NCBI GenBank assembly: GCA_009103225.1
Contig: RHPI01000810.1
Location: forward strand, 1,496,190-1,560,189
DNA from: Chlorokybus atmophyticus
Taxonomy: Eukaryota; Plantae; Mesostigma and Chlorokybus algae
DNA: 64,000 nucleotides
Direction: 5' to 3'
Shown: piece after piece, positions 2,564 to 64,000 of the stretch
Position numbering within the stretch: position 1 is the stretch's first letter
Layout of the letters: each line of letters opens with the position of its first letter
Notes under the pieces: generated by a model
What the model was told of the DNA's origin: nothing
Databases searched by the model: none
The model's input: the letters and a program-made list of their open reading frames with translations, nothing else
Program-made: the position numbers and the translations under genes

Positions 2564-3076
<513 letters not shown>

Positions 3077-6563: not shown

Positions 6564-9500
6564 ATGTCACGAGATGGGCTCGAGCGGCGCTGCCCTCTCG
6601 CATCCCCATCATCTGTCTTAATGTGTTGCCCTCAGGCCTGTGCAGCATGACTGCTTGTCGGATGAGTGCGGTACGGAGTTGTTGCTCCCCCACCATACCA
6701 GCTCCTCCTTGTTGTGTGGTGTCCCCTTGCGGGGTGAGGTACCCTCGCCCTGCATCGCGTTGATCCTCAGGCATGTCTTCGACCAAAGGAGGCAGCAGCG
6801 GGGCGATTACCCCCCGCAATTGTTGTGCCAATGCCCTCGCTTGGTCTGCAACAATTGCTTGTCTTGGCTGTGCGATGGCGACTGCCGTGAAGTGCCCTGT
6901 GGTCAGCGCCGTGGAGGCGCTGGCAACATTTGCCGGCGCTACGGCTGGTACGGCAACGGCGTGTGCTGCTTCGTACGCGTGTCGGCGCGCGTCCACTTGG
7001 GCAGCTTGGTCCACCTGATAACGATGTGCCTATTCAAGGGCAGAGAACCGCGCTTGACGGCTGCCTAGAGTGAGCCCTCGGAGAGCTGGATCAGTGCCCA
7101 GCGCGATGTCTGACATGGTGACCACGAGGTCTTGTATTTTGCGGCGCTGGAGTCCGAGTGCGTCCAATGGTGAGGGCTCGAAGCTGATCTGTTGAGCGGG
7201 CATGGGTTGCCGCGTTGGACTAAGTGCGCCCTGCAATCTTGCGTGTAATGCCAAGAACAACTAAACGGCCAGCTCTAACACTGCAAGTCGCCGGTAGGTG
7301 ACCCGGAAGAGACGATCCCTCATCTCCGGTGCAGTGCCAGCGAGGATTTCATCCTCCAGCTGCTGTTGTGTGGGTTCCGGCAGTGTGCGGTATTCTGGAG
7401 GTGGTAGGGGCAAGATGCGATCATCGCGTGCCACACGCATGGTGCGTTGCCCCCCTGGTCCGTACGCAATAGTGGTGGGCTCCACGTTGCGTAGAACGGA
7501 CGCCCAGGCGCGTTCTGCTTGTGGTCCGCGTGGCACTTGCTATGTGACATCAAGTGCTGGTGGTGGTGCTGTGCGAATCTCAGGTAGTGGTGCAGTGGGT
7601 GTGGCAGCACTACTGGAGGCGATGGTGGTGGCACCTGCAGCAGTCGTCATTAATAAGGTGGCGGCTGTGAGGGTGGCAGCAGTTGTGGCCGATGTGGTCG
7701 CTTCAATGGAGGCAGGAGTGGTGGATTCACCACCCACGAACCCAACGACCATGGTTGTTGCGGCGTTGGTGCGTACCATCACCGGGGACAGCGTGGTGCC
7801 AAGAGTGCTGGCACCTGCTGTCGCGGTCGGTGTGGATGCCAACGGTGTCGTCGACGGCGTCATCCCAGCGGTTGTTGTGGCTGCCGAGGCAGCACCACTT
7901 GTGGCGTCCGATGATGCCGCTGTTGACGACGCGCCAGCTTCCCTGCGCGCACGTCTTGATGGTTGTACGCGTGACGGCGTGGGAGTGTCCCTATCCTGTT
8001 TTGGTGCCATCAGCGCCCACCTAGCAGCATAGCAGGCTTGATAGTCCTGCTCCTTGTTCTCCTCCAGCTGTGCCACGCGCGCCATCAGGGCTGCCACTTA
8101 GTCAATAGCTGGTGGATTGGCTGGTGCCTTTACAGCAGCAGCCCCAGCGCGAGGACGTCCCTCAGGTCCTTCGTGCTGTGGAGGGCGGTTTTTCCCTCTG
8201 TAGCCAGCTTCTTCCTTGCGGGCCCCGGCGTTGTTGTTGTTGTTGGGGTTGTGGCCACCAGCGTTGTTGCCATTGTTGCGACCACCAGCGTTGTTGCTGT
8301 TGTTGTAGCCGCCAGCGTGGTTGCTGCTGTTGTAGCCCCCGTTGTTGTTGTTGTTGGTTGCCGCGGTAGCCAACAGCATTGTTGCCGTTGTTGTAGCCAA
8401 TAGAGGGCCGCAGCTCAGAGAACTTGAGCCAGCATACTGTCTCCAAGTGTCCCGTCTTGTGGCAGTAGTCGCACACAAGGGTGCCGTAATCTTCGGTGCT
8501 CCTTTTAATAGTGGCCATGCCGACCAGACAGGTGGCACAGCACTGGAGCCATAAGGGCAGCATAAGCTGACCGTTTATCCTTGTTGTGGATGCATTGCGG
8601 CTCTCGACTGCGGTCCCGCCGAAGGGGCTCTGCACTTGTGCCGACCATAGGCCGCGAGGCGCTGCGGTTGGTGTCCAACACTGCTTCTCATACTCCGCGC
8701 GCTTATGGATGGCTTGTGCAGTCTTGAAAGCCTCCTTGAGGTTGTAGCCGAGGGGCCTGCTGTAGTTCAGCGTCAGGCGCATCGACTCGCTCAGGGTGGG
8801 ATCCAACTCGGCCACATACACCACTGCTGCCGCCTCCTCATTGACGATCTTGTAGTCAGTGTCTTAAAGCAACCCTTCCAAACCGCGAATACAGTCGGAG
8901 AGGGTCCTTGTTGGGCTTCCGTCGAAAACGCCTCAACTCCTCCACCTTGCTTTTGGTCTGAGGTGGGAAGGTGCGCCGGAGTGCGGCGTGGAGGTCCTTC
9001 AACGGGGAGTCCGACATGGCAGCGCCCACCATAAGCGCGGGTGCACGCAACGCCACTAAGCCGAGGGTGAAAACACTGCCTCCCGCTGGAGCACGCGAGT
9101 TCGATGTTGGTAGCAGAGGCGTACCTATCTCCAATGCTGCAGCTTGCTGCTCCTCTTGTTGCTCCCTGATGATGGCAGCGGTGCGGTTGAGTATCCTGAT
9201 CCGGCGCTCGGCCTTCTTGCTTTCGATCTCTGCAGGAGTCAATGGGGCCACTACCACCTCAACTTCTTTATTCTCTGCCTTTACCATGGCTGCAGCTAGA
9301 GTGAGACCCGTGACTGAGGCTGGCGGGGCCGCTGCTACAGGGACAGTAACCGATGGGCTATGCAGTGACGTGGAGGCTATGGTGCTGGCCAACTCGCCAT
9401 AGCCATCAATCTTGTGCAACTCAGCAACGGACTTCCACACATCATGTGCTTCGTGATCAAGGTATTGAGCGGACACATGAAACAATACCTCATCTGTCCA

Positions 9501-10643
9501 GTCCTTGCTCTTGAGGGCTTGCTGCCGCATCTTAGAGTGGAACTTGATGATGAACTCGTCAAGTGAGGTGATGCCAGGGCGTCCGGAGCGTAGGGAGTTG
9601 GTTGAGCTGGAAGGCTTCATCTCCTCGTCGTCACCGTCCGACGGTGGTGGAGATGCTCGCTGTCGAGGAGTGGAGTGAGAGGAGGTGAAGCCGGAGACGG
9701 GGCGTGAGCCTCTGCTGCTACGGTAATCGCTCCCTTCACTTGCGCGCTCGTAGGTAAGGTTGGAGGTTGGGCTCCAGCTGCTGAGGTTCCCTTCTTCTAT
9801 TGGCGAGAAAGGGGTGGGCCTGCTCATACAGCTGATGGGATGGTGAAAGTGGATGAAGGGTAGAGTGTTTGTGCTCTACAATGGGATCTCCAATGCTGCT
9901 ATCACCCAACACACTAGCGCTTGTGCGCGCTATGCGATGACAGTGACAACAATGCACAGCGATGTGTACAACTACAGATTGCGATGCTGATGTGTAGCCT
10001 GCAACTACACTCACTTGAGCAAAGAGGGTGACACTGTGAGTCAACAAGCCACTACTATAGGTAGCGCTACTTACACAGTTCTTTGCATGAGTGGCAGAGA
10101 GATTACACTGTTAAGTGAGGTGAATGAGCAAGCAACACGTAGATGCTATGCCCTGACTGATGCCAACAAGCACACCGCAACCAAGTACACCAAGCTCACA
10201 ACAAGGACAAGCACAGTGCACACGAGCATGCACAGGCTCTCACATGGTGAGGGGATTCTTGGGACTTGGGACGGCGTGTTTCGTAGTTCAAGTCGCTTTA
10301 CAAGCTCTTAGCTTTCTCACTCACAGTGTCACCAGCTAATCCGGTGAACACTGTGCCTACTTATACAAGTCAACTCATGACTGTTCAGAACATAAGCTAA
10401 CGGTCATATCGAGGCTATTTCCACAAGAAAACCCCACTCGATATAGAACCCAACTTATAACTGAACTCACAACTGAACAACTACGCGCGTTGCCTATGTA
10501 GGCTATGGTCATGAGCTACTCTAGAGACATGACCTAGCTACTGGTCAGTGACGCGCGCGGGTCGCCATGCTGGTAAGCCGGGCGAGGGTCTCGCTGTAGG
10601 CATGCCCGATGAAGACTGACATGCCCGGGTGATAGGCATGACA
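6564..10643 (-). mobile_element. Retroelement copy A: upstream region plus gag-like ORF with CCHC zinc knuckle and Asn/Gly-rich tail (Ty3/Gypsy- or DIRS-like), frameshifted and truncated before the protease
   Basis: ORFs 9827-8856, 8824-8162 (VCDYCHKTGHLETVC knuckle), 8097-7540 and 7536-6564. The upstream 9860-10640 region is the reverse complement of 57050-57860 and 54370-54680. Confidence 0.75.
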
Positions 10644-13474
<2,831 letters not shown>

Positions 13475-16070: not shown

Positions 16071-16521
16071 TATTGCCTTAGGAGGTACACTTATTACCTT
16101 GTACTTCGGATTTGCTGCCCATAAGATAGACATAGTACTTTGGTGCTAAGATACATTGTTCGTAAAGCAAACACTGCAGCGAGCAATTTGCAGTTTATAA
16201 ACATGATAATTCAAATTAACAAGCACGACGCACACGGGGCGCGCTCGAACAACTGCCAATCGCGAGTATGTTAAAGAAGGTGACATGGTGTGGGTTTGCA
16301 CCAAATCTTGAGGTGTGAAGGTTGGTGAGAAGCTCTTCCCAAACTACAAGTGGTGCCCTCATTGCCTGTTGTAGATCTCTCGTTGGCAGAGATAATGCAG
16401 TAGCGGTAGTCAGCGACTTATATGTACATAGCAGTTGTAAATCATACTGTCTGCTGTTGCAGTACCTGTGTCTGCTTCAAGTATCATGTTTCCCAGTGTC
16501 ATGTGTGCACATAACAGTTAC

Positions 16522-16522
<1 letters not shown>

Positions 16523-16617
<95 letters not shown>
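16523..16617. repeat. Poly-C run ending in N (probable gap-fill artefact)
   Basis: 95-nt homopolymer followed by a single N at 16618. Confidence 0.85.
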
Positions 16618-17011
16618 NTCATTTTCTGCCACAAACTTAGCTGTTGGGACTCTTGTGCTGAGCACCAAGGCTCATGTGTGATTATGCCTTCAATATGCAA
16701 ATCCGCAGAAACCTTCATATGATCAGCTACATTCGGGCGACATTAAGTCGCCCGAGACCGATGTCACCAACCACGAGATAGAGGTTAATGACCGCAAGGC
16801 CAACGTCACCGATGGCAGGCTGAGAGCCACCCTAGCAGCCCCAGCAATGTTAGTACTCCCGATAGCAAACTCCCTCATCTCACCACGCAATACCTTCATA
16901 TAATTCGGTCGCATTACCCCTCCGAGAGTCTCATCATGACATGCTCAACAATAACATCACTATCTGTAAACTGCACAAGCTCGTTTGGTATGCAATTTGC
17001 ACAACATGTAC

Positions 17012-18224: not shown

Positions 18225-19615
18225 TGTCGCTGGTCAAATGCCCTTGAAAACACTGCTGTGCACTAGCTGTTTATGCACACTCAGTTCTTATGCATGCCAA
18301 CTCATGCCAGATTAGTGCAGTACTGTAACAAACATTTATAGCTTTTTAACTTTTGCAAGATGATGCATGACTCAGCAGTATACAGTTATGTGACCTAATG
18401 GCCCGCATGCTATACTTGACTAACGGTGACCCGGGATAAGGTCTGACCCTAGCAGGTGCAAGACCCAGCAACATGTGGCGGTGCCATAACCAGGCGGACA
18501 CCACACACAGTGGATGGGGGCCAAGCTGTTCTGGCGCCCTGTCAAGTCCTGTCCATTTGGTCGTTAATGCTGCTGGTGGCTGGGTCCGGGGTCTAACTGG
18601 TGCTCGTCTACACACTGCAGGTGGTACACCTGCCATGACTACATACCACGCCTTGCTACCTCTCCGTTGGTCTTGAGGGTCTCTAGCGATTACCTCGGGT
18701 ACATATGCTTTTGCGGAGTTTTGCTTTATGCAACTCTCTTGTGTTTTATGTAATCAGCCCTGGACTCTGGTTGAGCCGTTGGTTTTTCCAGGAAGCTAAT
18801 GATCCCCTTGCTGGGACCGGCCTGGGGCAGGTCACCCAATGCCACTGCATTTCCGTTTGCATGCTTGATGTATGGCTGCCAGCATGCGCATGCTATAACC
18901 GGCCAAGTAGAGTTGTAGCGGTTGGGTGTGGTTTTAGCGTAGTGTTGAGTTTACAAGTTACCATCCCGCCATCCTACCCCGGCACCAATATGCCAAACCA
19001 GGACAACAGGAGTGAGCACAAAAAGCGCATCCTTCACGTGAACTACTGGAAGCTGCCAATGCTCGACAAAATATGATCCAAGGCTTTACGGTTTGCACCA
19101 ACATCTGTAGAGGATGCATTGCATGTGGTTGATTCTGTTCGTGTGATGTTTTCAACTACTGGTAGTAAAAGGTGTTATGTTGGACTAACGCAGAAGTCAG
19201 CATTTCACAGATGGAAACAACACGGACAAGCGGCAACGAGGAGGAAACCCACAGCGGTTCAAAAAGCCATGTTGTCTGTGGGTTTGCAGTGCAGGTCTAC
19301 TATCCCCGTTAAACATGTGCCGCCGTGCAAGAATGATAGAGTTAACATATTGTGGTACTGCAGGGCAAGGGGGAGAGAATGTGAGTGGATATAAATTCTA
19401 CGCTCTCACCAACCCATGGGCTACAATACAGAACACAAGGCTTGCAAGAGGTCACGCCCACCTCATAAACGTGCACATATGGCTGTGTGAGGGGGTGTAT
19501 CAACAGTTGGTCAAGCATATTTGGCAACTGGTTGGCGCATGCATCGCAATATGTTTTCCCAGCCGGCCGACTAAATATTGGCAACGGCCGTGCACCTGAG
19601 GACGCTAATTTAGAC
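18225..19615 (+). mobile_element. 5' part of a Penelope-like element (Naiad/Chlamys type): pseudo-LTR plus N-terminal GIY-YIG endonuclease
   Basis: 18225-18770 is a diverged direct repeat of 36639-37270. Translation at 19119-19460 gives VRVMFSTTGSKRCYVGLTQKSAFHRWKQH...ECEWI/KFYALTNP/GYN (GIY-YIG core with frameshifts). Confidence 0.7.
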
Positions 19616-22192: not shown

Positions 22193-22725
22193 CTCTCCAA
22201 CTGATAGTCGGGTGCCGCCTGTTTAGCTGTAAGTGGCGCTGCCGCCTCCAACGCTGCCGCCGCCGGTTGGCCCGCCCGAATGTATGAGGCGCGAAAACGA
22301 AAATGAGGCGGTTTTGAACGTCTAGAGTCCCGCACTAGAGTCGCACTTGTAGTGCGTCCTTGCTCCTATGGTTGATGGTACGACTTATGCATTCGTGCCA
22401 TGCATGCTTCGTACAACCATTGTTACCAATGGTTGTGTCGTAACATTTATGGTACGACAGAGGCATCTCTCGTCCAACCCCAGCGATTGCCGTACAATGG
22501 CTCTGTCGTACCATCCATGGTACGACAGAGGCATTGCTCGATCAGCCCAAATGGGAGTTAGCATGCACTCACCCAAACACGCTTCATTGATGGCCGGATG
22601 ATGGCACGCAGGGGCACCAGGTCGATGACGGGTCGAATGTCAGGCTTGATGGGCCTGGGTTCGACTAGGAGGCGGAGGACCAGGAGTCGGAGGAGGCGGC
22701 GGCGGCGGCGGCGGCGTGGCACATC

Positions 22726-25700
22726 TTGCGAGAAGTTGTGGTCGTAAGAGTTCAAGCAGCGAAGCCAGCTACTACCGGTCGCCACGTCATGGATCATGGC
22801 AGGCGTCAGCAATGGGGCTGTCCAACATGCATCACCAACATTGGACAAACCAGCAGGCAAGCCATTAAAGACCATCTTCACACAGAGAGCTGCTTGGTGG
22901 CTCGCTTTCTGCAACAGGGAGTGGATCAGGAGCTGCAGTCCTTGGAGCCCCTTGTCAGAACCATGCGGGACCAGTTGCGGCTGTGGGAACAAGCACAAAG
23001 GAATGCAGAGGTACGCTCAACAGTCACATGCATTTCCTTGCAAGAGCAATTTGTTTTTTAGCGCAGTCCATGTGATATATGTAGCGTGGCTGCAGGCCTC
23101 CACTATTCACCCATACCCACCCTACAGTCAAGCCGACATTGCGGAAGCAAGAGCAGATAGACAGAGCTGGGCGGCGGTATGTTGTTGCCAATCTCGCTGT
23201 GCATGTTGACTGCAATGTCGGCTCCAATGCATGCCTACCTTTCCATGCTAGGATGTGCGTGAGCGTGCGAAGTCGCGCGCGCGTGCCGAACGAAGTAGGC
23301 TGGGTTTGAGCACAGGAGCGCGTGGCCATTCGTCCGGCATTCAACCAATAGTGCATCAACCAGCAATGACGCAGTCCATGCAATCATTCGTGCATCAACC
23401 AGCAATGCCGCAGGTGACTGTTCGAAGCAACCAACTGATGACGGTGTGACGCAGTTGACTATTGCAATTGCAGTGTCGCAAGCATGCAGCTAACCCACAT
23501 GTGATTGGTTGACAGCACCACAGTGCACTAAGTCCTGTTGGAGCTCCTATGCAAGCCTGGATTCAATCCCATCAACTGGTCCTTCAATCCCACTTGCTGA
23601 TGGGCGCGGCGGCAATGCGGCATCAGTTTAACATGCATGTTGGCCTGTTGAATCCCGACATGTCCATTGGGGCAGTGGCGCATGATGTGCCCATGGCTCA
23701 AGAGCTCCGTGACGAGTCTGCCATTGAGGGTGGCGGGGAGAGTGCAGCCAATACCACCTTGTCAGCCCCCATGGCTTCCCCTGCTCCATGCAGCCCACGG
23801 GCCATTGAGGTAAGTCGCTGTCTTTTATGCTCGTGCCTTGGTAACAATGCGTCAGGCACTGCATAAGCTTATATTCGTCCTTTGCAACATTGTGAGCCAT
23901 CTTATCCTGGGTCCTGTATACAGCCCCCCTTGCTGCATGCACAAGTGGTCTCACCTGCAGCTCCTGCTCCCCTCCCAGCCAGAGCGCAACCACCTTCCGC
24001 GGCACCAGTCCTTCGTGCACTGCCATCTCCTCCACGAGCAGCACCGGTGATTGCGGGGCAACAATCCTTCTTGCCGCCACCGGCGAGACCACAGCACAAT
24101 GCAACAACCGATGTGGCTTCTGCACCTACCTTACCCCACCCGCTGCAAGTTGAAGCCGGCAGTCTGCCCCAAACTCAGGTACTTTATCAGTCACTGTGAC
24201 TCTTGCCGTCCATAGTTGGGCACACCATGTGAGTGCTGTATGCGCATGCAGCAGGGGTCACCACCTGCCAGCGAGTCATCAGAGGAGCTGGCCGCAACCC
24301 GCCGGCCATCAGTCATGCTAGGTGGCCAGCTCGCCTCATGGGACCACTTCAATGCGCCAACGGATGGTAACTGCTTCTACCATTGTGTATTTCGCGCCAG
24401 GCCATCCATAGCGCAAAGTGTCCTGGATGATCACAAGTGCCCCAGCTCGAGCAGATTTTGGGCCATGCTAGACACCATGGACAACGACGGCAGGGGGCAC
24501 ACTCTCCGCAAAATCACCGCCAAGGCTGTCGATGCAGGCGTGGCGAGCAGAATCCTAGACGTCTGCAGGGCCACTGGTGCCGCGGGAGAGATGGCGCAGT
24601 ATTACGACAAACTGCCTGCGACCATGTTGGCTGATATCAACTGCAACATTGACCTAGCCATGGCCAAGGTGCGACAGATCGTGCAGAGAAAAGATGTGTC
24701 CGTCGAGCACCTGCAGATGACCATGTTTGCCAACAAGCTGGGCTTGTTGATTGGCTGCGTGACCGTTCAGCGCGAGCATGGGGAGTGGGTGCCACGGCCC
24801 GGCAGCGCAGTTTGGGTTGGAAATAAAGAAGCCCCCAACTCAGTCCTGGTGGTGGGCAACACTGCTCCTGATGAGCCAGAAGCACACTTTTGGCTCCTCA
24901 AGCCTGCAAGCATCGAACAGTGGTCGTGGCCTATGCATGAAGTGCCATCGGAGGTAACACACCTGATCGGAGAGTGGCGGCATGGCGTTGCCAATTCCCC
25001 GCTACCACCGGCTGTGACCCAGAGTGCTGCGCCAACTCAGGCCTCGCCTTCGTGTGCTAGGCAAGAAGTAGCCGAGTGTTCTGCACATCCTGCCTCCCCT
25101 CAACCACAGCCACATGCTCGCAATCCCAATTCAGCACCCTCCCTTCCTGCCGCGGAGACTCACTTGCCACCGCACTCTGACCATCCGGAGGCNTCTCCAT
25201 CAAGAAGCAGCTGTAGCTCGCCTTCGTGTGCTAGGCAAGAAGTAGCCGAGTGTTCTGCACATCTTGCCTCCCCTCGACCACAGCCACATGCTCGCAATCC
25301 CAATTCAGCACCCTCCCTTCCTGCCGCGGAGACTCACTTGCCACCGCACTCTGACCATCCGGAGGCATCTCCATCAAGAAGCAGCTGTAGCTCGCCCTCT
25401 CCCTCTAAGCTTGCCACATTGATCCCAGCCTGTCTTGTTGGTAAAGAGATTGATCGAGGTGTCCTGAAAGCTGCGCTGAAAGACAAAGGCTTCATGCTCG
25501 ACCTCATGAAGCAACATGAGGTCGTGGAGGAACGGGAGGCAACCAACAAGCGCAAGGCTGTGGAGCAAGAAGATAACGCCTTACCTCCTCTGAGTGACAG
25601 TGCCACGGAGAGCGCCTGCCAGGATGTGCAGGGTGACAAAAAAAAAAAGAAGAAGGTTGTTGGAACAAAGGACGCTGACAGGACCAAAAAAGGAAAGGTG

Positions 25701-26808
25701 AGGCATCGTTACAACATTAGAAGAAGCACAGCGCCTTGAAGCCTCACTGGGGCTGACTGTGTGTCCTGAGTAGGCACAGGCGGGTTTACAGCGTCAAGTG
25801 GCTGCTCAGCATCGTCCAGAGAGACAGCCGGTGCGGCACGAGCTGCCTAAGCTCAAAGCACCGACGCGCAGACGCTTTGGGGGGCTGACTCGTAGTGCAA
25901 AGGAGTTGATCACCCTACAGTACGCCCAAGACGCGCTGCATCACCGCATGCGGCATGCCTCGAGGTGGGTGACGAAAGTTTGCAATAAGTGGGAGCAAAC
26001 GCGGAGAATGCGGTCTAAACAGACCTCTGGGGATTGGCCGTGGTTGGAACCCATACACGATATGGCCATCCGTAGTACGTTGTTGCCCCTCGCCGTCCTC
26101 GATATGATGGTGTTGTTGCTGCCGCAGCACCCCGGCAATGTGCAAGAGCTATCTGCGGAGCAGAACTTCGACCTGCTGCAGCAGATGTACCTGTCGATGT
26201 CGACTAATGCGGGTCGAGATGTGTGCCACTACCTGAGCAAACATACTGGGTGGCAAGTAAAACCATTCGAGCTGTACTTGGCATGCTTTGGCTGGCAGTG
26301 GCTGTATGTCATACGGCACGTCGAGCTGATTCTGTGGAAGCTCGAAGAAAATGACGATGCGGGGGAGTACACGAGTGACGACAGCCATGTCGAGGGCCTG
26401 GATGAACGCATGCTGGACGAGACCACCAAGACCAGCAGGTGGTGTATGGCGGCAGATGGGCGTCAGGTGATCGAGCAGGCAGTGGAGCGTTATGCTGCGC
26501 CATTCAGATGGGAGTCGCTACGCCTGCGACGCGATAACAGAGTTTGGTGGCAGAGGCAGCTTGCACACCCGCGTGCACCATGTGTGCTGATTTGTCGCAT
26601 TGAAGAGCCACCCCCCCCAGCGGATGGGGAGACGCCCTGTTGCAAGAAAGCGATGTGCCATGTCTGCATCATAGCACATCAGAAGACTGTGGCAAATAAA
26701 TCAAAGAATCTACAAGCGTGTCCATTCTGCAAGCAACCTCACCCGTTTTGGTCGCCACGCCTGATGCAAGACGCCAACGTGTCGGCGGTGTTTTGGCCCC
26801 AGCCTTGA
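22726..26808 (+). CDS. Predicted spliced cargo gene: Zn-finger-like N-terminus, Pro-rich linker, OTU-type cysteine protease, C-terminal RING-like finger (5' end uncertain)
   Basis: CPTC...HLHTESC at ~22816. OTU motifs NAPTDGNCFYHCV (~24350) and AHFWLL (~24880). A phase-0 intron at 25698-25791 (GTGAGG...CTGAC...TTTACAG) joins ORF 24216-25739 to ORF 25798-26808, which ends CVLIC...TPCCKKAMCHVC...CPFCKQ. Confidence 0.65.
25043..25390 (+). repeat. Two tandem 174-bp (58-aa) near-identical units within the OTU gene
   Basis: ctcgccttcgtgtgctaggcaagaag starts at 25043 and 25217; there is an N at 25194. Confidence 0.85.
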
Positions 26809-27200
26809 TGCCAATTGTGCATGTATTGTAGTTTTGTGTTGGCTTCCTGTGAACCATGTGGGTACATGTATAGTTGCAGCATGGTGCATGGTGCACCAGA
26901 GATCTGCTGTTGTTAGAAGCATTGGCTGTACATGTGTATGATGACTGCCCGGCGCATGAGTCAGTGCATGGCTTGCATACCTCGCTGGTTTAAAGCGTGG
27001 TTGACAACAACAAACTCGGACAGCGCTCTGGGTTCCATGGCATGACATCACAGTATTACTCTACGATCGTGATAGTATGCGAGTATCCTTGTACTGTAGT
27101 ACCATTAACAGATAGAGTACCATTCATGTTGATGTAGTACCATGCATGGTACTGCAATAGCGTATAAGGTACAGTCGTGCTTCACTTGAAGTTTGACCCA

Positions 27201-27291: not shown

Positions 27292-29020
27292 ATGATGTCG
27301 GCGGCAGCAGTTGAATCACCCTCACCTAGGAGACCATGCTTGGTGTGCCCACAATGCAATGCGTACGTATGTGCCAATGGCCGTAGGCAGCAAATGCGAG
27401 CACACTTGACCGAATGCCAGCGAGTGCAGACAGTGTGCCACGGTTTTAGTGCTGCTTGCTGGCATCACACCACACACAATGTCGACGTGTTTGGCTGCCG
27501 CCTCGGCCAAGTGCTGTGCAAGGAACCCGAGTTTTTCCATTGCGTGCAGTGCGTGTGCGAATCGTGCTCGCGCTCATGCTTCGAGTGGCGAGGGGAACCC
27601 ATGCGCTTCTTCACATGGACAACACCGGGACATGTGGTTAGTGGACAGGTGGTGGATGCTGTGGAGGTAATCCACAAGAGTGGACCGCGACGTATCACTG
27701 CATGTTATGTTGGGCGTATGCTTATTTCATGCATGTTGAAGCTGTTGTCGCATTCAGAGCAGTCTTGCACGGTGTGGGCGTGGGCAGTTCCATCCCCTGG
27801 CCGCTGTAGAGGAGGCAGACCATCGACCGTTGGACAGCGCACTGCATCGGCTGCGGAACGCAGTTAAGTTGGGATGCGAGCAGCTGATCGGTGTGAGTGT
27901 CATGGTGCATTGGCCGCTGGATGGGGAATGGTATGCGGGCGTTGTGGAATCATTCAAGCAAGCGTCAGGTCAGCATCGCTTCGTGGCGTGCGAGATTGAG
28001 GACGCATCATATATGCATGGTGCAATGGAAAATGTCTTTGCAGGGCAGCACCGTATAGTATTCGATGACGGTGATCGACCACAAACCATCAACTTCAAAG
28101 GGCACAACGTATTCGCGTACACATCAGTTGACGGGGCACGCCATGTTCTGCGCGCCGGAGGGGAGAACGTCAGTCGCAAAGTAAGCCCGGACGGCATCAT
28201 TGTTAGTCCCTGGCCAGCACCACGGCCAGCCTTGACCACATACACGCCATTTGACAACAAGCTGGGACGCACACGCAGACCAAGGGCACTCGACCTATTC
28301 TGCGGCGGTGGCGGTGCCAGTGTCGGTCTATACCACGCAGGCTTTGACGTGACCGGGATGGACATAAGTCCCTCCTCTGAGTACCCGCTGCCCTTCATAC
28401 ACCGCGATGTATGCACCCTGAGTGCAGGAGAGCTGAGCGAGTACGAGCTCATCTGGGCCAGTCCACCATGCCAGGCCTATTCAGGTGCTATCCCGGCACC
28501 TCAACGGGCGGCACATGGCACATCCTGGAGACACCAGGATATGATACCGCTCGTCCGACGTCTGCTGCTTGCAAGCCAGGTCAAGTTTGTGATTGAGAAT
28601 GTGCCAGGAGCAGCTTCCTCATTCAGACCCAATCTGTCCCTTTGTGGCACGATGTTTGGCCTATCAACTTTCCGACACCGTCTGTTTGAGACACAGCCAG
28701 TGGTAGCTACCCCACCAGCACGCTGCTCGCACGCGGGCAAGGCAGTTGGACTGCTATCGCCGCACCTGTCCGCTAGCGCGAAGAAGACAATCGTGACATC
28801 AAACGCGCCACAGCAGATGTACCCGGTCTATGGCCTTCCAAGCACCAGGGGCGGCATTGCTGCGTGGCAAACAGCGCTGGGAGTGCCATGGATGACCTCG
28901 GCCGTTTTCATAGCGAATGCAGTTCCTCCCGCAATGGCGGAGTGCATAGGGCGTCTCATGCTTGAAACAATGGATATGCGCTGTGACTACCCTCCTATGT
29001 CATTGAACTATGAGGCTTGA
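27292..29020 (+). CDS. Cys-rich Zn-finger + Tudor + C5 cytosine DNA methyltransferase (3 exons)
   Basis: Predicted introns ~27667-27759 and 27969-28043. Tudor-like LIGVSVMVHWPLDGEWYAGVVESFKQASG|QHRIVFDDGD. MTase motifs: I ALDLFCGGGG, IV IWASPPCQ, VI FVIENV, VIII FRHRLF, X IANAVPPAMAECIG. No internal stops. Confidence 0.9.
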
Positions 29021-29163: not shown

Positions 29164-32100
29164 TTAGCAATGCCTAACTGACTGATATGCTCCAAACCGA
29201 GAGTAGTGAGACAAGTACATGTGTGACGTGGAAGTGCAGTGAACGTTCACCCAATACTTGCCCTCTTGTACACGGGCGCTGTCCTTGTCAAACATGGGGA
29301 GCAGCTGGACAATGCCTTTCACTTGCTCCAGAGTCACGACATCGAGATGTGGACCGCCTCGACGCTTTTCCCATTCCAGAGCGATGCACTTTGTGTCGCT
29401 CGTCACATCCAGCTTCGTGTACCAGCGGACAAACACGACCTCCTTCCACACGCGCTCGCCGCTACCACCCCACACCACCACGCGCAGAAAAAGGAGTGCC
29501 TGAGCCCACCACGTCACGTTCACACCGTCCTCATCACCTTCCAACTCAAGTGTAGAGAACCAAGGCCGCCCATGGAACATCCCAGTTGCGCGCGCCATGC
29601 TGACTCCTGATGTCATGTACACCGCTGCGCCTCCGTTCACCACGCGAACAGCACGCCACCCGTCGGCCAAGTCCAGTTGTTCCCTCCTCAACCAGCTGTC
29701 CAGGGTGGCAGGCAGCTTGTCGGCAAATGGAGTCTTCAAAGCGACTTGGCGGCTACGCGCAGATCCGCTCCAGTACGGGCTGCACTCCCTCCTTGTCAGC
29801 ACATCCATCCGTAGCAACTTGTCCGTCTTCTCCATGACATTACAGCACTGCTGCCGCGCCTGCGCCATGACCGAGCGCATCTCGGGATCCACGACCATGC
29901 CATCCTCTCTCACATATTCCGCACAGCTCCATGCCTTCAGGATACGTGCCTGGTAGTCCCGGTTGTTGCCACCACGCGCCCACCGTTTGATATTTTGGGC
30001 GTGCGTCTGCTCCATGCGGTTGGCGCTGAACCAATCTGGGTGTCCACTGCTGACAATTGCCGGCCCAAAATGAGTGAGCTGATGCATCTTCTCGATCTTC
30101 CAACCTGACTTCTGTGCAGAATATGACGACAGTAGCGGATGCAACACTGCAGCTTTGAAGGCAGCCAGCTCGTTGTCGGCTGTGGTCAGGGTCTCTCTTG
30201 TGTGTTCATGCGCCTTCAGCAACTTCTTGTTCCACTGGGCAAGCGATGCGGCAGCAATGGTGAAGAAATCGTTGCCCTCACTGTCGAGCAGCAAACCGTC
30301 TGCGAGGACCGGCAGCAGCTGCAGCACCGCCACTTTCTCCACCACCTGAAAGGAGTGGTCGGACAGGAAGAAATCTACTGTGCTTGTGGGTGCCTTGAAG
30401 TGCGAAACCCGCAGAGTCGCCTTGCATGCATTCAGCCTGTGCACATCTGCTCGTGAGCACGTGTTGTTGGCTTTTGTGTTCAACACAAAAGCAACACCAA
30501 AGACGTGCCTGGCCTGCAGAATCTGTCTCGTGGATGGACGCATTCGTTCCTTCGCGGCGTCGTACACAGCAGCAAGCAGGTGGTCAATGATGCCTCCCAG
30601 CACATGCATTGCGTCAGGGGCAAGACGAGAGTAGCAGTCAGCTCCCGGCACCCGCGACTGTCGCCAACCCCACAGTGCATTCTGTTGCCAAACCACATTG
30701 CCTGGTTTCACGGAAAGCCATTCATCCTCACGAATGCCGATAATTTGACCATTACCTCCTCGACATGCATGGAGTGCTGCTCTTTGAAAGCCTTGGCTGT
30801 CTGGCGTGCATTCCTAACACCGCTATGCAGGTCCGCCCGCAGCTGACGTATTGCTGGTGTGTAGAAGGCCTCGGTTCTCAATTCCCGGTCCTCATCCATC
30901 TCCAACAGATCTGATTTGGTGACGAGACAAACATCGCAAGGATGTCGTGTTTGGTTGCCCGACACAGTGCGTGCGAGTGTGGCAGTCTCCTACAACACGA
31001 CAAACTCAGATGTTCTACTGACAACATCCTCCATGCACTGTTTGCTGGCAGGCTGCATCCGGTTACAACCATTCATGCCCACTACCTGCAAATCGCTGAT
31101 GTAGTTGGCAAGCGCGGGAAACACACGACGCTCGATGCCATTCGGGTCGATGAGCTGCAGACCTTCCCAACTCGCCCGCTTCACATCCCCTAACACTACA
31201 TTCAAAGCGTCATGAAAAATCTCACGTTTCCGAATGGAGAACGATTCCTTGCCCTGCGCCCAGGTGGGATGCCCGGCCACTGCGTGAACCACCGGCAGAA
31301 GCGCTATCATAACAACCCCCATGTTGCTAGCATACATGTCCCAACTGTAGTTGGCAAGCGATGCCATCAGAGGGTAGCCAGAGCGCTTGCCCGCGCTGTC
31401 CAGCGTGGTCTTGTCACTGTACAGAATGGCAGGCGCCAAGTAGGACGCTTCCCCCACCTCTCTCCTCAAATCCACCTCCACATCCTTCCACCAATCGCCC
31501 GTGGAAGGATGGCCAAAGCTGTGCTCGTCACCAGTGTACTGGAGATTGAAGCCATTGGCGGCATGTGGATTGCCATACAACCGCGCGAGCCATACCTGCT
31601 CCGACCAAGAGCATTACTTACTATGCTGGCCTCAGAATAGATACTGCATCGATACTGCATTAGGTACTGCATTTCACAGACCTTGGCCGGCATATATGTG
31701 ACGCAGATGTCCTGATCCTCAGGGTCTCCAGGCTTGCGCAGGTCAGCCGTCACGTAGTTCTGATACGGCAGCACACTCGCATGTGCATATGTGACATGGC
31801 TCTGATGGTTGAAGCACATGCACCGCACACCGTGAACACACCTCAGACTGAGAGAAAGCAATCGTGGTCCGGAGGTAGCTGGCCGCATGCACACCGGTCT
31901 CCCACTGGAGCTCTTCCGTCAGGAAGTGTGCATTTCGGATGCACTTGATGATCCGCCCCATGTCGGAGGCCGACAGGCCTTGGCCGTTGTTGCACTGCAC
32001 GAATGCCACTGCAAGAGCATGCTCCGAGCCATACCACCTGGATTCCGACGCGTGCGAAGGGACGCCTCCACTTCCATGTTGGCGTGCCACAGGTTTCTCA

Positions 32101-32366
32101 GGCACACGCACACATCGAAAGCCCTCGTTCACTTCCTCCTCCTCCTGTTGCTGCTGTGCGTGTGTCTCCTGGAGGAATCCTTCAGCATCAAGCATGTGAG
32201 CATCCTGGATCGAACTCCCCGGTTCAACATGACCCGCATCGTACTGTAATGGACGCTGGCCGACATACAGCTTGATCTGCTTGCACACCCTGCTGCTAAT
32301 AATGTGCATGTAGACCGAGCTGCGTGTGGCGAAGCGCATGTGGCAATACGGACAAAGGACTCCCAT
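29164..32366 (-). CDS. Plavaka-family transposase with N-terminal C2H2-like zinc finger, multi-exon
   Basis: CPYC...HIISSRVC finger; AILYSDKTTLD...GYPLMASLAN; ISDLQ|ETATLA...HPCDVCLV (intron 30990-31085); APDAMHVLGG; KIEKMHQLTHFGPAIVSSG...NRMEQTHAQNIKRWARGGN. Intron 30682-30755 links ORFs 30708-30965 and 29164-30711. Confidence 0.85.
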
Positions 32367-32433
32367 ATCTCACTACTAACGTCGACACAGGTGTCGCCAA
32401 TGTAACCTGCATCATATCCAGCAACACGCACAC

Positions 32434-32465
<32 letters not shown>

Positions 32466-33169
32466 GCCACCGCTACCGCTACCCTTGCATGCCAGAGGCG
32501 GGAAACTTGGCCGCCATTCACTGGCTCCGTCGTACCATTATAATGGTACGATCGAGCCATTGCACGTCCAGGGTGAGTCTCTGGATATTTTTATATACAT
32601 ATATATTCTGATTGAACCGTTTCAATGGTACGAAGATGCCTTTGCCAAAAGGTATAGGCATTGTACAAAGGTACCATTGAAATGGTACCTTTGTACAATG
32701 GCAATGGCAGTTCGTACCATTGACAACTCTGGCAATGTCAGTCCCCCTGCGCATGAAAACACCATTGATAGCTCCGCCAAGCTATGCCCTTACAGGGGCG
32801 TGATGCCGAGGGTATGTGGCGTTTGGAAGATCGTTGGCGGCGCTGCCAGGGGCGTAGTGGGCATTGTGGTCGAGGTCCGGGATGAATTCCATGTTCGCAC
32901 AGGGCGGGCAGGGTGCCGGAGGGGTGTCCTCGGTGTCAAACCCCACCAAGACTACCAAGGGCACATCCAATGACAACAGTGACTCGGGCGATATCTTACA
33001 GGGCTCCCCCTCCGAGTGGGCAAAGGCACACCACAATACTGCCTCTAAGAAAATCCGACCCACCAGCAGCTGCGACCACGGCGACATGATTGAAGGGACC
33101 AAACAAGACTGGCATAACCAAGGTGGGTTACGATGCACTGTCAATGCCACATGCTAGGGTTCTTTTATC

Positions 33170-33737
33170 TTGCACATGCACAGCCTCAAGTATCTTGCAC
33201 TTGACATACATTGTCAATACGACATGCACACCCTCATGCACAACCTCCAGTGTCATGCACATGAACAGCATGACCAATCTCGCAAATGCACAGCCTATTT
33301 CTACTTGCGGGAGCTCACAAGTCGCAAAAGAGAAGCTGCGGAGTCAAACGAACGGGTAATCTATGACCTAGTTTAATGTTTCCAGCGGTAATTAAGCAGT
33401 ATGCTTGCAGATTGCCATGTTGGTCAGAGTGAACCAAGAGCAGCGCGGCAGGCTGACTGTCTGCCTGGCGGAGTGCAACAAAGCGGAAGACGAGGTAAGC
33501 GTGTGTATGCTGATGGGCTAGTCCTCTGGCAGCACGCCACTCTTACAGCATTACCAAATGCAGGTGGTCACTCTCAAAGCGACCATCAAGCGCATGCGCG
33601 TGCACGGCGAGGCGCTGACATTCAAGCTGAAGGACGAAGTAGCCGCTGTACTGTCAGCGAGCGAGGCAGCGGATGAAGATGACTCCGGCGTTGAAGCAGA
33701 AGACTCGTCGGAGGAGGAACAGGAGGAGGGGGTTTGA
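33170..33737 (+). CDS. Small 3-exon coiled-coil/acidic-tail cargo gene divergent from the transposase (start uncertain)
   Basis: ..YFYLRELTSRKREAAESNER|IAMLVRVNQEQRGRLTVCLAECNKAEDE|VVTLKATIKRMRVHGEAL...EEEQEEGV* with GT-AG junctions; conserved in the copy at 12365-12944. Confidence 0.55.
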
Positions 33738-34296
33738 GGAGGAGTTCTTAGGCAGGCACCACGGGTTGACAAGCTGCGCATGAGTCCGACAGCTAGACTC
33801 AATGTTATAGGATAGTTTCATGCGCAAGTCGGCTGCTCAGTTGTAAGTGGACATACTCTCACCACTGCCCGTACATTGTATATATTGTGGGCTTTTAGGT
33901 GCAAGACCAAACAATCAGTCTTAGGTTTGAACAAGCTGCATGGCATGGTAGTGTTGGCTTACGGCAAGAATTGCCAACTTTTGTCAAATGGCAAGGGTCA
34001 CATATTAACAGCAGTGTAACGGCAAAGAAACTGCCGGCTATTGCTGTCAGCTGTCCGTAACTACCGGTCAACGGCCGTCTGTGCACATCGACCAAAGGGT
34101 AAATGGTTGACAACTCTCGGCCGGTTAGTGCCACTGACAGCCACTTTCGGCCCGCGGCCGTCTGCGTCAGTCCACTTAAGCCAACGGCAAACCCAACAGT
34201 CCAAAAGTAATATTTCAGGCAGCAACAGGCAGGCTCAGGCAGGCTCAGGCACCAGTCAGTCCCTCAGTCCTTAGTCAGTCACCGTGTAAAATCCGC

Positions 34297-37270
34297 GACG
34301 TGTTTGCATATCGTGATATGCAATATGACCGCAGAATAAGACATCTAGCATGATCCATGCAACGTGGCACCTTTCACAGTATACATTTGCGTGCACACAT
34401 ACAAGCTGAGGATTTTATATCGTATGCTTAATTGTTAGACCAAATCTCCAGCAGCGCATTTGTACATTCGGCTAGCACAGGCGGAAGCACTGCGAGGAGT
34501 CTTGAAATTGGCGGTAAAAGCAAACTGCGCATGTACCACGGGCAGGTGCCAACCAACACTAAGTGATACGGAGTGAGTTTCCAAGTGCTGTTCTGTTGAA
34601 TTTGCCTCACATCATACAGTCACCTGCTGTAAAACAACATCCGCCACCTTCTGTACTAACTACTTGGAGACCGCCGTTGATTTCCTTGAAATACAGGAAT
34701 ACAATGCTAGGTAGCATGCAATTGCACGCGCATTGCCACACAAACAACCATGGCAAAATATCTGGGGGTATTGGGTGCACAATGTGTTTGTGAAAACATG
34801 CCGTATGCTAAGTATGTCCATCCACAATTAGGTCACATTCAAAGATGTCACATGTGAATATGCCTTAGTGCACGCACAGAGCAAACAAGCTTTGCTAATA
34901 GCGGGTTCTACGTATCGGCAACCAGCTGCGACCTGTGTACAATTGCATGTGGCTGCTTTTACTAAAGGGATTTGGGATTATGCTGACAACTGGGCTGAGC
35001 TGCAGGGCTGTGACAACATGGCAGCATGGGCCACTTCTGTGTTGGAGTCAGTAAAAGCAGCGGCGCTGAAGCTCAATAAAGATGCCTTGTCTGCGCACAA
35101 GCCAGCACCAACCTACACCACCTCGGACAAACATTGGGCGAGGTCGTTGCATGACGCATTTGTTTTCGTAAAAGTGGATAAGTGTAATGGGATCGTTGCA
35201 GTGTTGTGCAAACAACTGTACTTGACGTTGTTGCATGATGATCTGAACACGCCAACCTAGGAAGTTGTGGGTGAGAGCGCAGCGTAGCTTTTAGCAAGGC
35301 GCAAAATCTTCCGTAATTTCCGGATACAAGCCAACACAGCATGCAGTAGAAAGTCTGCCCCACCTCTACATTACAGTTGCACAAGATGCCACATATGGCA
35401 AGGTATATTGCGGCTGGCAATAAATTTTTGACGAATGGCAGTGCATGGCTAGCCCGTACTTACAAGTTTCTACTGCCAGTCTTTGACCAAATATGGTTGA
35501 GCGATGTGGCAGTGCCGAGACTACAGAGCAGATGGGTGCTACATGACTCGTAGGGGGTCCAAAACATGCTGCAACTGGAACACAACACAAGCTCTAGTAC
35601 AGATATGTTGTTGCTAGTAAACATGCTCTCGTATGACTTCACAAATCCGTACACCAACATACACCATGCAGACTTGCTCTCGTGCATGTCTGACTTGGTG
35701 CGAGACTCTTTAAAATGGTTACAGTTTAAGACAGGGGAGCAACTGTGTTTTAAGTGTTGTGTATAAAGGGTATTTTGAATCATCAGTGGGTGCGCCACAT
35801 GGCAGGCCAGAGACAGCAATAACACCAAGTTCTTTACAGCTGCATGCTTGACAGAGTTGTTGCAATACTTGCTGAGCAACCTCTACGTGACTATTGCACA
35901 GACAGACTACACAAGCAGGCTATTAGAATCCCAATGGGTAACTGCGCGGGGGTCTACTTAGCAAACTTCTACCTCGGGTTGAAGGAGCTCAGGTTTTTGC
36001 GGGCCCTCGAGGCCATGGGTTGCATGGAGGTTCTGCGTAGATGGTGTTGTGCACTGGTACGCTATGTGGATGACATTCCGCTCTTGGACATACCGGCATT
36101 TAAGGAAGTAATGTACACAGGAGAGTCAGTGTTGGCAGGTGGCCTATATCCGAAGAAAACACTAACACTGACACGGTTGGCTGCTGGAACTGTAATTGAT
36201 GTTTTTAATATGACTTTAATTCAAACAGCTGACATTGGCTTGTGCTCCCGAGTATACTGCAAACTAAATGACAACCAGTTTCACACCATACCAAGGAGAC
36301 GAGGACCACACCCTGCAACGGACATTGCCAAATCAGCTAAGCTTGGTGTCATTGTCTCAGAATGCATTAGATTATTGAAATTGTGCACATCGTTTACACT
36401 TTTTGGCAGAGATGGTGGCTCTACTGCATGCTATGCAACAGGAAGGCTATGCTAAGCATGCTGTGCTAAAAGAACTACGCAGGTGGATGTACCGCCAGCA
36501 AGAAATGGTTTATGACGGGACGTACATGTACTTGTGCCACCTGGTCTACACCAAGCGCAACACTACACCACAACATGTAGGTGAGGTAAGTGCGGAGAGG
36601 TAAGCAGTGTGGGAAGCAGTACATCTGCCCACATGCATGTCGCTGGTCAAATGCCCTTGGTAACTGTTGTGTACTAGCTAATCATGTACATTCAGTTCTT
36701 ATGCATGCCAACTCGTGCTACATCAGTGCAGTACTGTAACAGACATTCATGGCTTTTTGAATTTTGCAAGATGAGGCATGACTCTGCATTACACGATCAT
36801 GTGTTATAATGGCCTGCACGCCATACTTGACAAACTAACGGTGAACGGGGATAAGGTCTGATCATAACAGGTGTAAGACCCAGCAACATGTGGCGGCGCC
36901 ATAACCAAGCGGACACCACACACAGTGGATGGGGGCTAAGCTGTTCAGGCGTCATGTCAATTCCTGTCCGTTGGGTCGTAAATGCTGCTGGTGGATGGGC
37001 CTCGGGTTTAACTTGTGCTCCTCTACACACTGCAGGTGGTACACCTGCTGCCATGACTACATACCACGGCTTGCTACCTCTCCGTTGGTCTTGAGGGTCT
37101 CTAGCGTCTAGTAGTTGTGGGTTCTATTGAATGAGGTGTAGTAGGTAACTCTATCTTGGCCTTCACTTATTTGCTTGTTTGCTAGCTTGCACTTCATGTG
37201 TATGCATGGTTACCTCGGGTACATTTGCTTTTACGGAATTTTGCTATATGCAACTCTTGTGTGTTATGTA
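34297..37270 (+). mobile_element. 3' part of the Penelope-like element: CxC linker, reverse transcriptase (decayed) and 3' pseudo-LTR
   Basis: VFAYRDMQYDRR (34300); CVCENMPY CxC (34783-34791); LIAGSTYRQP; LHDAFVFVKVDK; QLHKMPHMARYIAAG; SYDFTNPYTNIHH (motif A); IPMGNCAGVYLANFYL (motif B); RYVDDI (motif C). 36639-37270 repeats 18225-18770. Confidence 0.85.
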
Positions 37271-38529: not shown

Positions 38530-42732
<4,203 letters not shown>

Positions 42733-63000: not shown

Positions 63001-64000
63001 TGATGTGACTTGTGTATGCTCTGGTGGCGGTAGCTCTGTCTGTGTGTGTCCATGCTTGCCTCAGCTACATGTGCATGCTAGTTTTTCAACACAAGTTTCA
63101 TTTCAAGATGCGACAGCAAGCGATGAAGAACAAAGACTGGCTCAGATGAGATTTCCACGCTGCTGCTCAATAATTTGACCACAAAGCACACGATGTCTAA
63201 AAGTCTGTTGCTGAACCGCATCGAGTCGATGGCTATGGCGAGCTCGCCACCATATCATATGCGCCACTGCACAGTCCAGCAACCGTTGTTCTACTTGCTA
63301 CACTAGCTACAGCACCGGCTTGTCCATAGCTGCAGCCATCAAGAGGGCAGAGGAGGAGGCGCCGGAGTTAGTGATCGTCAACCTGACCCCCGCAGGGATT
63401 GAGACCAAAACGGTCGCACGGCAGGCCTAGATCCTAAACCGTTCTGCTGCTATAGTTGAAGAACAACGGGCTGCAGTCGTTGAGATGGGCACGCCTTTAC
63501 GTATGGCAACACATGGCTCTCGTGCTAGAGGCAGTGCTTTCGCCCTCGGGTAAGTTGCATTGCGCGCATCAGCCATCATCATGAATGATTGTAGGTGCTG
63601 CCATCTCTGATTCTCCACTCAAGGACCTATACGCTGCACTTCGTCGCACCTTCCCACCTCAGACCACCAGCAAAGGGAGGAGCTGAAACGGTTTCGACGC
63701 AAGCCCAACAAGGACCCTCTACGCCTGTACTCTAGACTGCAAGGTCTATGGAAGGACACTGACTACAAGATCGTTAATGAGGCTGCTGCTGCAGTGGTGG
63801 TATGTCAATAATTTGGACTCAACCTTAAGTGAGACAACACGCCTGACCCTGAACTATAGCAGGCCCCTTGGCTACACACTCAAGGACGCCTTCGAGATTG
63901 CACAAAGCCATCCACAAACGCTTAATGTATGAGAAGGCATTGCTGGACACCAACAGCAGTGCCTTACGGCCTGTAGCCAGCACAACTGCTGAGCCTCCTC
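57050..64000 (+). mobile_element. Retroelement copy C: upstream region and gag start (57867), interrupted by Copia, resuming at 63092 and running off the window
   Basis: MSRPTPFSPI...TSLNEFIIK at 57867-58164 matches ORF 9827-8856. After the Copia, FHFKMRQQAMKNKDW...RFRRKPNKDPLRLYSR continues the same protein. Confidence 0.8.
58165..63091 (+). mobile_element. Full-length but inactivated Ty1/Copia LTR retrotransposon (4.9 kb)
   Basis: 433-bp LTRs at 58165-58597 and 62659-63091 (TG/CG...CA); PBS GGTTATGGGCCC at 58598; purine tract before 62659; TSD CAAGG/CAAGT. Domain order: gag, CQWCGRKGHIERDC, WVVDSGS protease, LVHMDACGP integrase, RT (RYKARLV, LLVYVDD), RNase H (CDSDFAGD). Many frameshifts and stops. 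Confidence 0.95.

Follow-up and report, generated by a model that had tools for sequence, protein, structure and literature searches.

A giant-virus-type cytosine methyltransferase gene with a Tudor domain, a candidate Plavaka cargo, in Chlorokybus atmophyticus

We analyzed a stretch of 64,000 nucleotides (nt) from Chlorokybus atmophyticus (assembly GCA_009103225.1, contig RHPI01000810.1, positions 1,496,190–1,560,189, forward strand), hereafter the window, in which a candidate C5-cytosine DNA methyltransferase gene lies beside a gene for a Plavaka transposase. The methylase gene, at 27292–29020 on the forward strand, is best read as three exons with a predicted product of 520 amino acids (aa), and appears to be intact. 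Exon 1 (27292–27666) provides 125 codons from an ATG and is rich in Cys and His. Exon 2 (27758–27968) encodes a predicted linker helix and the first half of a Tudor domain (LIGVSVMVHWPLDGEWYAGVVESFKQAS), with the cage residues W177 and Y184. Exon 3 (28044–29020) supplies the second half of that domain (GQHRIVFDDGD, with F202, D204, and D206), a linker, a complete C5-methyltransferase (MTase) domain, and a DYPP tail followed by a TGA stop. Putative intron 1 (27667–27757, forward strand; 91 nt, GTAATC...TTCAG) shifts the frame from exon 1 to exon 2, and intron 2 (27969–28043, forward strand; 75 nt, GTCAGC...TTGCAG), which is in frame and stop-free, interrupts the Tudor domain. The GC content of the two introns (46% and 49%, respectively) is flank-like, compared with 57–60% in the exons (56.8% in exon 1). 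A third intron at 28181–28278 was considered and rejected, since its length of 98 nt would break the frame before motif I.

All five C5-MTase motifs are contained, as a previous sequence-only reading of this DNA had claimed, in a single open frame of 396 codons (27830–29020, forward strand). They follow the canonical order I–IV–VI–VIII–X within a domain that spans residues about 271–517, and all lie on the forward strand: motif I FCGGGG at 28298–28315 (within DLFCGGGGAS, residues 279–288), motif IV SPPCQ at 28460–28474 (with Cys338), motif VI IENV at about 28592–28603 (E380-N381-V382), motif VIII RHRLF at 28673–28687 (R406 and R408), and motif X NAVPP at 28916–28930 (P490). When M.HaeIII is aligned through the family profile, motif I falls on LFSGAGG and motif IV on GPPCQ, so that motif I and the PPCQ cysteine coincide. 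The Pfam profile PF00145 reaches 26.4 bits (cut-off 22), with a match limited to the N-terminal half. Aligned with 33 relatives, and again with 59, the window protein retains every residue that is invariant in the family, including D279, G285/286, P336, C338, E380-N381-V382, C396, R406, R408, and P490. An AlphaFold2 model built on a 60-row alignment has a predicted local distance difference test (pLDDT) score above 90 across most of residues 270–517, and a Foldseek search retrieved C5-MTases exclusively, a bacterial enzyme ranking first. Together these results show that the C-terminal part of the protein is a compact (about 250 aa) C5-cytosine DNA methyltransferase, predicted to be active.

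Could the gene instead belong, as a divergent member, to one of the canonical eukaryotic families (MET1/DNMT1, CMT, DRM, DNMT3, or DNMT5), or encode a DNMT2-like tRNA methylase? Foldseek does list DNMT3, DNMT1, MET1, and DNMT2 structures at E-values of about 1e-8 to 1e-6; however, these matches are generic to the fold, at 12–20% identity, and rank behind the bacterial enzyme. The family profile matches DNMT1/MET1 only over the 26–29 residues of motif I (21–25 bits), whereas viral relatives score at E 1e-40 to 1e-62. No BAH, RFTS, chromo, PWWP, ADD, SNF2, or UBA domain was detected by Pfam in the window protein, which thus has neither the RFTS and BAH domains of MET1/DNMT1 nor their large target-recognition domain or any close similarity to them. 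The embedded chromodomain and BAH domain that mark the CMT enzymes are missing as well, and the catalytic domain is colinear with viral enzymes of 290 aa, with no insertion. DRM enzymes have circularly permuted motifs, with VI–X ahead of I–V, and UBA domains; here the order is the canonical, unpermuted one. Neither the PWWP/ADD modules of DNMT3 nor the SNF2 ATPase and RING of DNMT5 are present, and DNMT3 structures match at the level of the fold, with 12–15% identity. In addition, the fusion partners present in some relatives, namely HNH, DNA polymerase A, or methyl-CpG-binding domains (MBD), argue for DNA as the substrate. By sequence and fold, the canonical families are effectively excluded as the source of the core, and we give this explanation of the gene hardly any credence.

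The affinities of the core are viral. An exhaustive HMMER pass over 1.84 billion representative proteins gave 4225 relatives, and 263 relatives were retrieved. The best database relatives share 35–48% identity with the window protein, with coverage limited to the catalytic part, and in all of the best 150 the best-scoring matched stretch starts at query residue 246 or beyond. A 292-aa query, the C-terminal segment translated from window positions 28142–29017, matches the phage family phrog_363 at E 6.3e-27 over its residues 38–271, while the dcm profile TIGR00675 reaches 22.7 bits against a cut-off of 100; the top match in BFVD is a Pithovirus MTase (E 2.4e-17). As a neighbour-joining (NJ) tree of 259 taxa gave very low bootstraps, a focused tree of 55 taxa was used instead. 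There, the window protein and 24 others form a clade of 25 members (95% bootstrap) that is separate from the 30 representatives of phages and bacteria. Five members of this clade were examined, and all five reside on dense, intronless, giant-virus-like contigs, which carry, respectively, an RNA polymerase with an intein and PolB (L001); SNF2, RING, and kinase genes (L003); ATG8, PhoH, and RNR (L167); a capping methyltransferase, a viral rhodopsin, and a kinase (L168); and Rpb10, a kinase, and RING (L169). Judged from these comparisons, the core belongs to the viral family phrog_363 and falls within a giant-virus-like clade. The sequence-only reading had likened it to prokaryotic and viral orphan methylases rather than to MET1, CMT, or DRM. 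The profile, Foldseek, and phrog_363 results support a compact enzyme of viral/prokaryotic type; the NJ tree and the five contigs refine it, the nearest clade being giant-virus-like rather than directly bacterial or phage.

The C-terminal DYPP tail is common to a subgroup of seven relatives. Four of these (P0004, P0006, P0123, and P0124, from loci L004 and L006) carry an MBD (PF01429) in the variable region, between motifs VIII and IX, which places a writer and a reader together within the target-recognition region; the window protein has no such insert. On the contigs of two relatives a gene for a 2-oxoglutarate-Fe(II) oxygenase lies directly upstream of their methylase gene (L005, 3–1439; L006, 2–541), that of L005 having an additional PLOD-type glycosyltransferase part. 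The top-scoring relatives P0001, P0002, P0003, P0007, and P0121 are about 450 aa long and consist of two tandem copies of the compact methylase.

Ahead of the catalytic domain the protein contains a Tudor domain. The unspliced sequence matches PDB entry 7DE9 over 40 residues (23 bits, E 3.4e-4); once intron 2 is removed, the match extends over 47 residues (39.5 bits, E 4.6e-9) and crosses the junction of exons 2 and 3 without a break. The structure is that of the Tudor domain of Arabidopsis RDM15/PDS5C bound to H3K4me1 (PMC8184781). Its aromatic cage is formed by Trp616, Tyr623, and Tyr641, with Asp643 and Asp645 coordinating the monomethylammonium, and Glu647 and Gln654 contact H3R2 (PMC8184781). 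In the alignment W616 corresponds to W177 of the window protein, Y623 to Y184, Y641 to F202 (the aromatic ring being kept), D643 to D204, D645 to D206, and E647 to P208; Q654 falls outside the aligned part. The cage spacings of 7 and 18 residues are the same as in RDM15, that of 18 residues between Y184 and F202 being exact only once intron 2 is removed. Given a conserved cage at identical spacing, the methyl-lysine pocket, half of which is encoded by exon 3, looks intact. Because intron 2 keeps the frame and contains no stop, the sequence by itself does not force its removal; the homology does. The Pfam family PTM_DIR17_Tudor matches at E 5.5e-4, below its cut-off. The Tudor-like module that the sequence-only reading had completed by removing 75 nt is therefore a genuine Tudor domain in a eukaryotic, intron-bearing gene, and it is of the RDM15/PDS5C H3K4me1-reader type, with binding predicted. 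Both proteins have a single Tudor with a Trp/Tyr/aromatic cage and two Asp at the same spacing; in RDM15/PDS5C, however, the domain is part of a cohesin regulator and has Glu647, whereas here it is attached to a methyltransferase and has Pro in that position.

An upstream coding exon is required, because the Tudor frame has no ATG before 27902, a position that itself lies within the Tudor domain. Exon 1 was assigned to this role on frame logic, the lack of any earlier ATG in the frame of exon 2, the drop in GC within both introns, and a promoter-like palindrome on its 5' side. Its 125 residues include 14 Cys and 7 His and open with C-x2-C-x2-C-x4-C; its product is probably zinc-binding, to judge from this composition, with no family assignable. 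No Pfam domain matches it, nor did a query with the N-terminus plus the Tudor domain find any homolog at E up to 0.01 among 5.8 billion proteins. Of the 263 retrieved relatives, none has a match to either of these two parts, even with E-values up to 10 allowed. Of the Cys/His-rich first exon proposed before, then, the composition stands, while a defined domain and the joining of the exon to the rest of the gene are not established. Overall, the gene model shows a viral-type catalytic module with eukaryotic additions around it: two short introns of apparently spliceosomal type, one Tudor domain, and a Cys/His-rich N-terminus.

The same features might be read as those of a decaying, nonfunctional relic, open by chance, with a frameshift in place of intron 1 and an in-frame insertion in place of intron 2. 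The join of exons 1 and 2 can be taken for a frameshift just as well, intron 2 preserves the frame and contains no stop, and an orphan viral DNMT of Acanthamoeba has been reported as unexpressed (PMC12344493). Nevertheless, a frame of 396 codons has stayed open, all 15–20 family-invariant residues and the five cage and Asp residues of the Tudor domain are kept, both introns run from GT to AG with flank-like GC, and the cage spacing becomes exact only after splicing. We thus regard a relic as improbable and an apparently intact gene as the better description.

The neighboring transposase gene lies on the reverse strand at 29164–32366, convergent with the methylase gene and with the two stop codons 143 nt apart. 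It reads as a series of three open reading frames (ORFs; 207, 196, and 515 aa) that presumably correspond to exons, and its product has a C2H2-like finger at the N-terminus. Pfam identifies the middle ORF (30990–31580) as Plavaka (PF18759; E 5.7e-23, 82 bits vs. a cut-off of 26); for the 515-aa C-terminal ORF the homolog search was empty at the thresholds used. Plavaka elements are now grouped with EnSpm/CACTA-like elements and not with KDZ (PMC12730594), and the transposon context proposed earlier thus acquires an identity, that of a Plavaka (CMCT/EnSpm-like) transposase. A second, incomplete copy of the element at 10644–13474 (forward strand) contains the 5' end of the transposase gene and 1.9 kilobases (kb) beyond it, and is 95–97% identical to 31445–34300. 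At the protein level, the 5' part of the transposase recurs at 10597–11562 with 94% amino-acid identity. This second copy shows that the element has been repeated recently. The two copies cease to resemble each other near 13474 and 34300. Nine of the 47 transitions between them are at CpG, with no clear excess that would point to CpG decay. A further pair of repeated blocks, 18225–18752 and 36638–37270 (86–89% identical), follows the first pair in the same order, with a spacing between blocks of 4.8 kb in one case and 2.4 kb in the other; the two pairs may be parts of a single larger element whose middle varies, or they may be repeats that have nothing to do with each other.

The two genes also have a rare sequence upstream in common. 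The exact palindrome GTACCAT-N2-4-ATGGTAC (16–18 nt) occurs four times in the window, with none expected by chance; a spacer of 1–5 nt (GTACCAT-N1-5-ATGGTAC) likewise gives four occurrences for an expectation of 0. One copy, GTACCATGCATGGTAC at 27137–27152, lies 140 nt upstream of the methylase ATG, with four GTACCAT/ATGGTAC heptamers clustered around it at 27099–27146, and is a candidate shared promoter or binding element. Two others (GTACCATTATAATGGTAC at 32532 and GTACCATTGAAATGGTAC at 32671) belong to a cluster at 32519–32720 (170–320 nt upstream of the transposase ATG) and lie about 170 and 310 nt from that ATG, respectively. The fourth, GTACCATCCATGGTAC at 22508, is in a third cluster (22375–22536) that adjoins a (GGC)n run mirroring the (GCC)n beside the transposase promoter, and this cluster may mark a left-hand transcription unit of the same element. 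Of 17 heptamer cores in the window, 14 are located in one of these three clusters or at the corresponding place in the second element copy (11691–11734). Of the evidence gathered here, the sharing of so rare a palindrome speaks most strongly for the genes being a single unit. The palindrome family can be written as CAATGGCTCTGTCGTACCAT / ATGGTACGACAGAGGCATTG, and its clusters stand upstream of three transcription units; its CGTAC core may resemble the GTAC core bound by the SBP-box factors of plants and algae. Comparison of the three upstream regions revealed nothing in common beyond the short palindrome and the GGC runs. Downstream of the clusters, exon 1 of the methylase gene (27337–27420, forward), the transposase N-terminus (32280–32366, reverse), and an ORF at 22726–23061 (forward) open with a similar C-x2-C...H-x3-6-C pattern. 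That these could be paralogous fingers was considered and dropped, pairwise BLASTP not being significant.

We infer that the methylase gene is Plavaka cargo because the transposase gene ends 143 nt away on the opposite strand and the same rare palindrome stands upstream of both genes. The Plavaka domain, this spacing, the four palindromes, the second copy at 95–97% identity, and the transposon-rich surroundings all speak for it. In our judgment the chances are slightly better than even that the gene is cargo of a Plavaka transposon and that its product would be a chimeric, chromatin-guided de novo C5 methyltransferase made up of a giant-virus core, a host-type Tudor domain, and a zinc-rich head. 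Several observations weigh against it. The second copy breaks off at 10644 inside the transposase gene, short of the methylase, and co-mobilization is thus not demonstrated. The methylase gene is present as one copy in the window, and neither terminal inverted repeats nor target-site duplications (TSDs) enclosing it were found there, the right end having no inverted partner; the published Plavaka termini (TGT..ACA or CATCA..TGATG, with TSDs of 2–3 base pairs) were not found in the window either. The join of exons 1 and 2 is a gene model. An exact look-up of 18 window ORFs (chosen among the 30 ORFs of 180 aa or longer and the shorter ones) in a collection of 15 billion proteins found none of them present. 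Within the 25-member clade the sister group of the window protein has low NJ bootstrap. With Pro208 at the place of the H3R2-binding E647, the histone target may differ from that of RDM15. Finally, the N-terminus plus Tudor region is poorly modeled, both from the single sequence (AlphaFold2, pLDDT 34) and from an alignment. As no element ends were found and the window shows one copy of the methylase gene, "transposon-borne" is likely but unproven. Of the earlier proposal of a horizontally acquired methylase that gained introns and a histone reader inside a transposon, therefore, the viral-type core, the introns, and the Tudor domain hold, and the location inside the transposon is not established.

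In the main rival scenario, the gene is a host-domesticated gene or the remnant of an endogenized giant virus, which acquired introns and a host Tudor exon, and the Plavaka insertion beside it is unrelated and does not mobilize it. The nearest relatives of the methylase are giant-virus genes, orphan viral DNMTs are documented in eukaryotic genomes (PMC12344493; PMC11244446), and the single methylase copy, the lack of enclosing termini in the window, and the virus-like layout of the adjacent long intronless ORFs are all in keeping with this. However, a Pfam scan of 17 window ORFs, which fell short of a full six-frame scan, showed no hallmark of nucleocytoplasmic large DNA viruses (capsid, PolB, RNA polymerase, or packaging ATPase), and there is no host gene nearby. 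The palindrome common to the methylase and transposase genes and their convergent spacing also favor a single unit. We deem this scenario rather unlikely and retain the Plavaka cargo reading.

A mechanism can be proposed for the protein. The Tudor domain would bind to a histone lysine in a mono- or low-methylated state, H3K4me1 being the best guess, and the Cys/His region may contribute contacts with DNA or protein. The methylase would then flip out a cytosine and methylate its C5 by means of Cys338 (PPCQ), Glu380 (ENV), and Arg406/Arg408 (RHR), so that 5-methylcytosine (5mC) would be deposited on chromatin bearing the mark. The element might benefit by marking its own copies or the transcribed regions into which it inserts, as has been proposed for DNMTs borne by retrotransposons. 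The full account, in which a Plavaka element captured a giant-virus MTase, a host-type histone reader, and a zinc module and writes 5mC on marked chromatin, probably that with H3K4me1, is one that we put forward tentatively and hold to be doubtful as a whole.

Two long intronless ORFs on the forward strand (24216–26808; 507 and 336 aa, 58 nt apart) stand in the interval that separates the left palindrome cluster from the methylase gene, and are possible further cargo. Both, at 24216–25739 and 25798–26808, are negative in Pfam and have no significant family match. For the first, an OTU reading suggested by a DGNCFYHC motif was rejected, the PDB match to a nairovirus OTU reaching E 0.65; for the second, whose end has the RING-like Cys/His pattern CCKKAMCHVC...CPFC, a RING reading was rejected on a TRIM30 RING match of E 0.18. 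The 507-aa ORF contains an internal tandem duplication of 174 nt (25043–25396, 98% identical) with one N. None of the 166 loci that encode relatives of the methylase contains a Plavaka transposase, a Tudor domain, the N-terminal module, or the neighbor ORFs, and viral contigs scanned with the Plavaka ORF yielded nothing.

The window as a whole is transposon-rich eukaryotic DNA of about 52% GC with retroelement fragments, and has no Rfam match. Retroelement debris at 846–1724, 8623–10643, and 57044–63999 includes an aspartyl-protease ORF and a Pol beta-barrel ORF (59017–59814); two direct repeats resembling long terminal repeats (58166–58597 and 62660–63091) are 89% identical and 4494 nt apart. 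An inverted, diverged retroelement copy abuts the second Plavaka copy at 10643. Perfect (GA)n/(TC)n arrays occupy 2564–3074 (511 nt), 11750–11987 (238 nt), and 40806–41646 (841 nt), and a poly-C tract about 100 nt long occupies 16519–16618. Each of these has single Ns next to it and may be either a true microsatellite or an artefact of the assembly. In the second copy of the element, part of the palindrome region has given way to the (TC)n tract.

Parallels to individual parts of this locus are known. Orphan viral DNMTs in eukaryotes are generally described as having no companion domains (PMC12344493), and work on Amoebidium has described DNMTs in giant endogenous viral elements as well as Plavaka-flanked giant repeats made up of intron-poor genes (PMC11244446). 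As in these cases, the window has a catalytic domain of giant-virus type, distinct from DNMT1/3/5, in repeat-rich eukaryotic DNA; the difference is that the gene adds a Tudor domain, a Cys/His module, and introns, and adjoins a transposase rather than viral hallmarks. Retrotransposon-borne DNMTs are exemplified by SymbioLINE-Dnmt, SymbioDIRS-Dnmt3, and the Dnmt3 retrotransposons of Klebsormidium (PMC5890265). There, too, a mobile element apparently has its own cytosine methyltransferase with conserved catalytic residues, but the enzyme, in many cases a host-derived Dnmt3, lies within the coding region of the element. The window presents a cut-and-paste Plavaka neighbor, a giant-virus-type methylase encoded separately by a convergent gene, and a candidate histone reader fused to that methylase. 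Fungal DNA transposons, Plavaka included, carry genes for TET/JBP dioxygenases (PMC12730594). Like these and the Amoebidium repeats, our locus has a Plavaka transposase beside a gene acting on 5mC, with extra intron-poor ORFs alongside; the TET/JBP cargo, however, removes or oxidizes 5mC, whereas the cargo here would write it. The compact C5 methylases of phages and bacteria in phrog_363 (about 210–300 aa) share the motif set of the window protein and its short variable region. In contrast to the window protein, which is nearer to the giant-virus subclade, they stand alone, with neither introns nor chromatin readers. Our literature search turned up no DNMT of this clade with a fused histone reader or with a Plavaka transposase as its partner.

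DNA methylation in eukaryotes is usually described as a host defense against transposons and viruses, the known exceptions being DNMT-bearing retrotransposons and the viral orphan DNMTs, for which an absence of companion domains is reported. If the cargo reading is true, the Chlorokybus gene would be the first histone-guided DNMT on a DNA transposon, a three-way chimera of virus, host, and transposon. It would also show that a targeted de novo methyltransferase can arise in a new way, one that parallels the use of PWWP/ADD domains in DNMT3 or of a chromodomain in CMT, and would offer a compact catalytic module of about 250 aa with a natural chromatin-targeting domain. Such a gene would be relevant to the question of how systems of 5mC may be reacquired after their loss.

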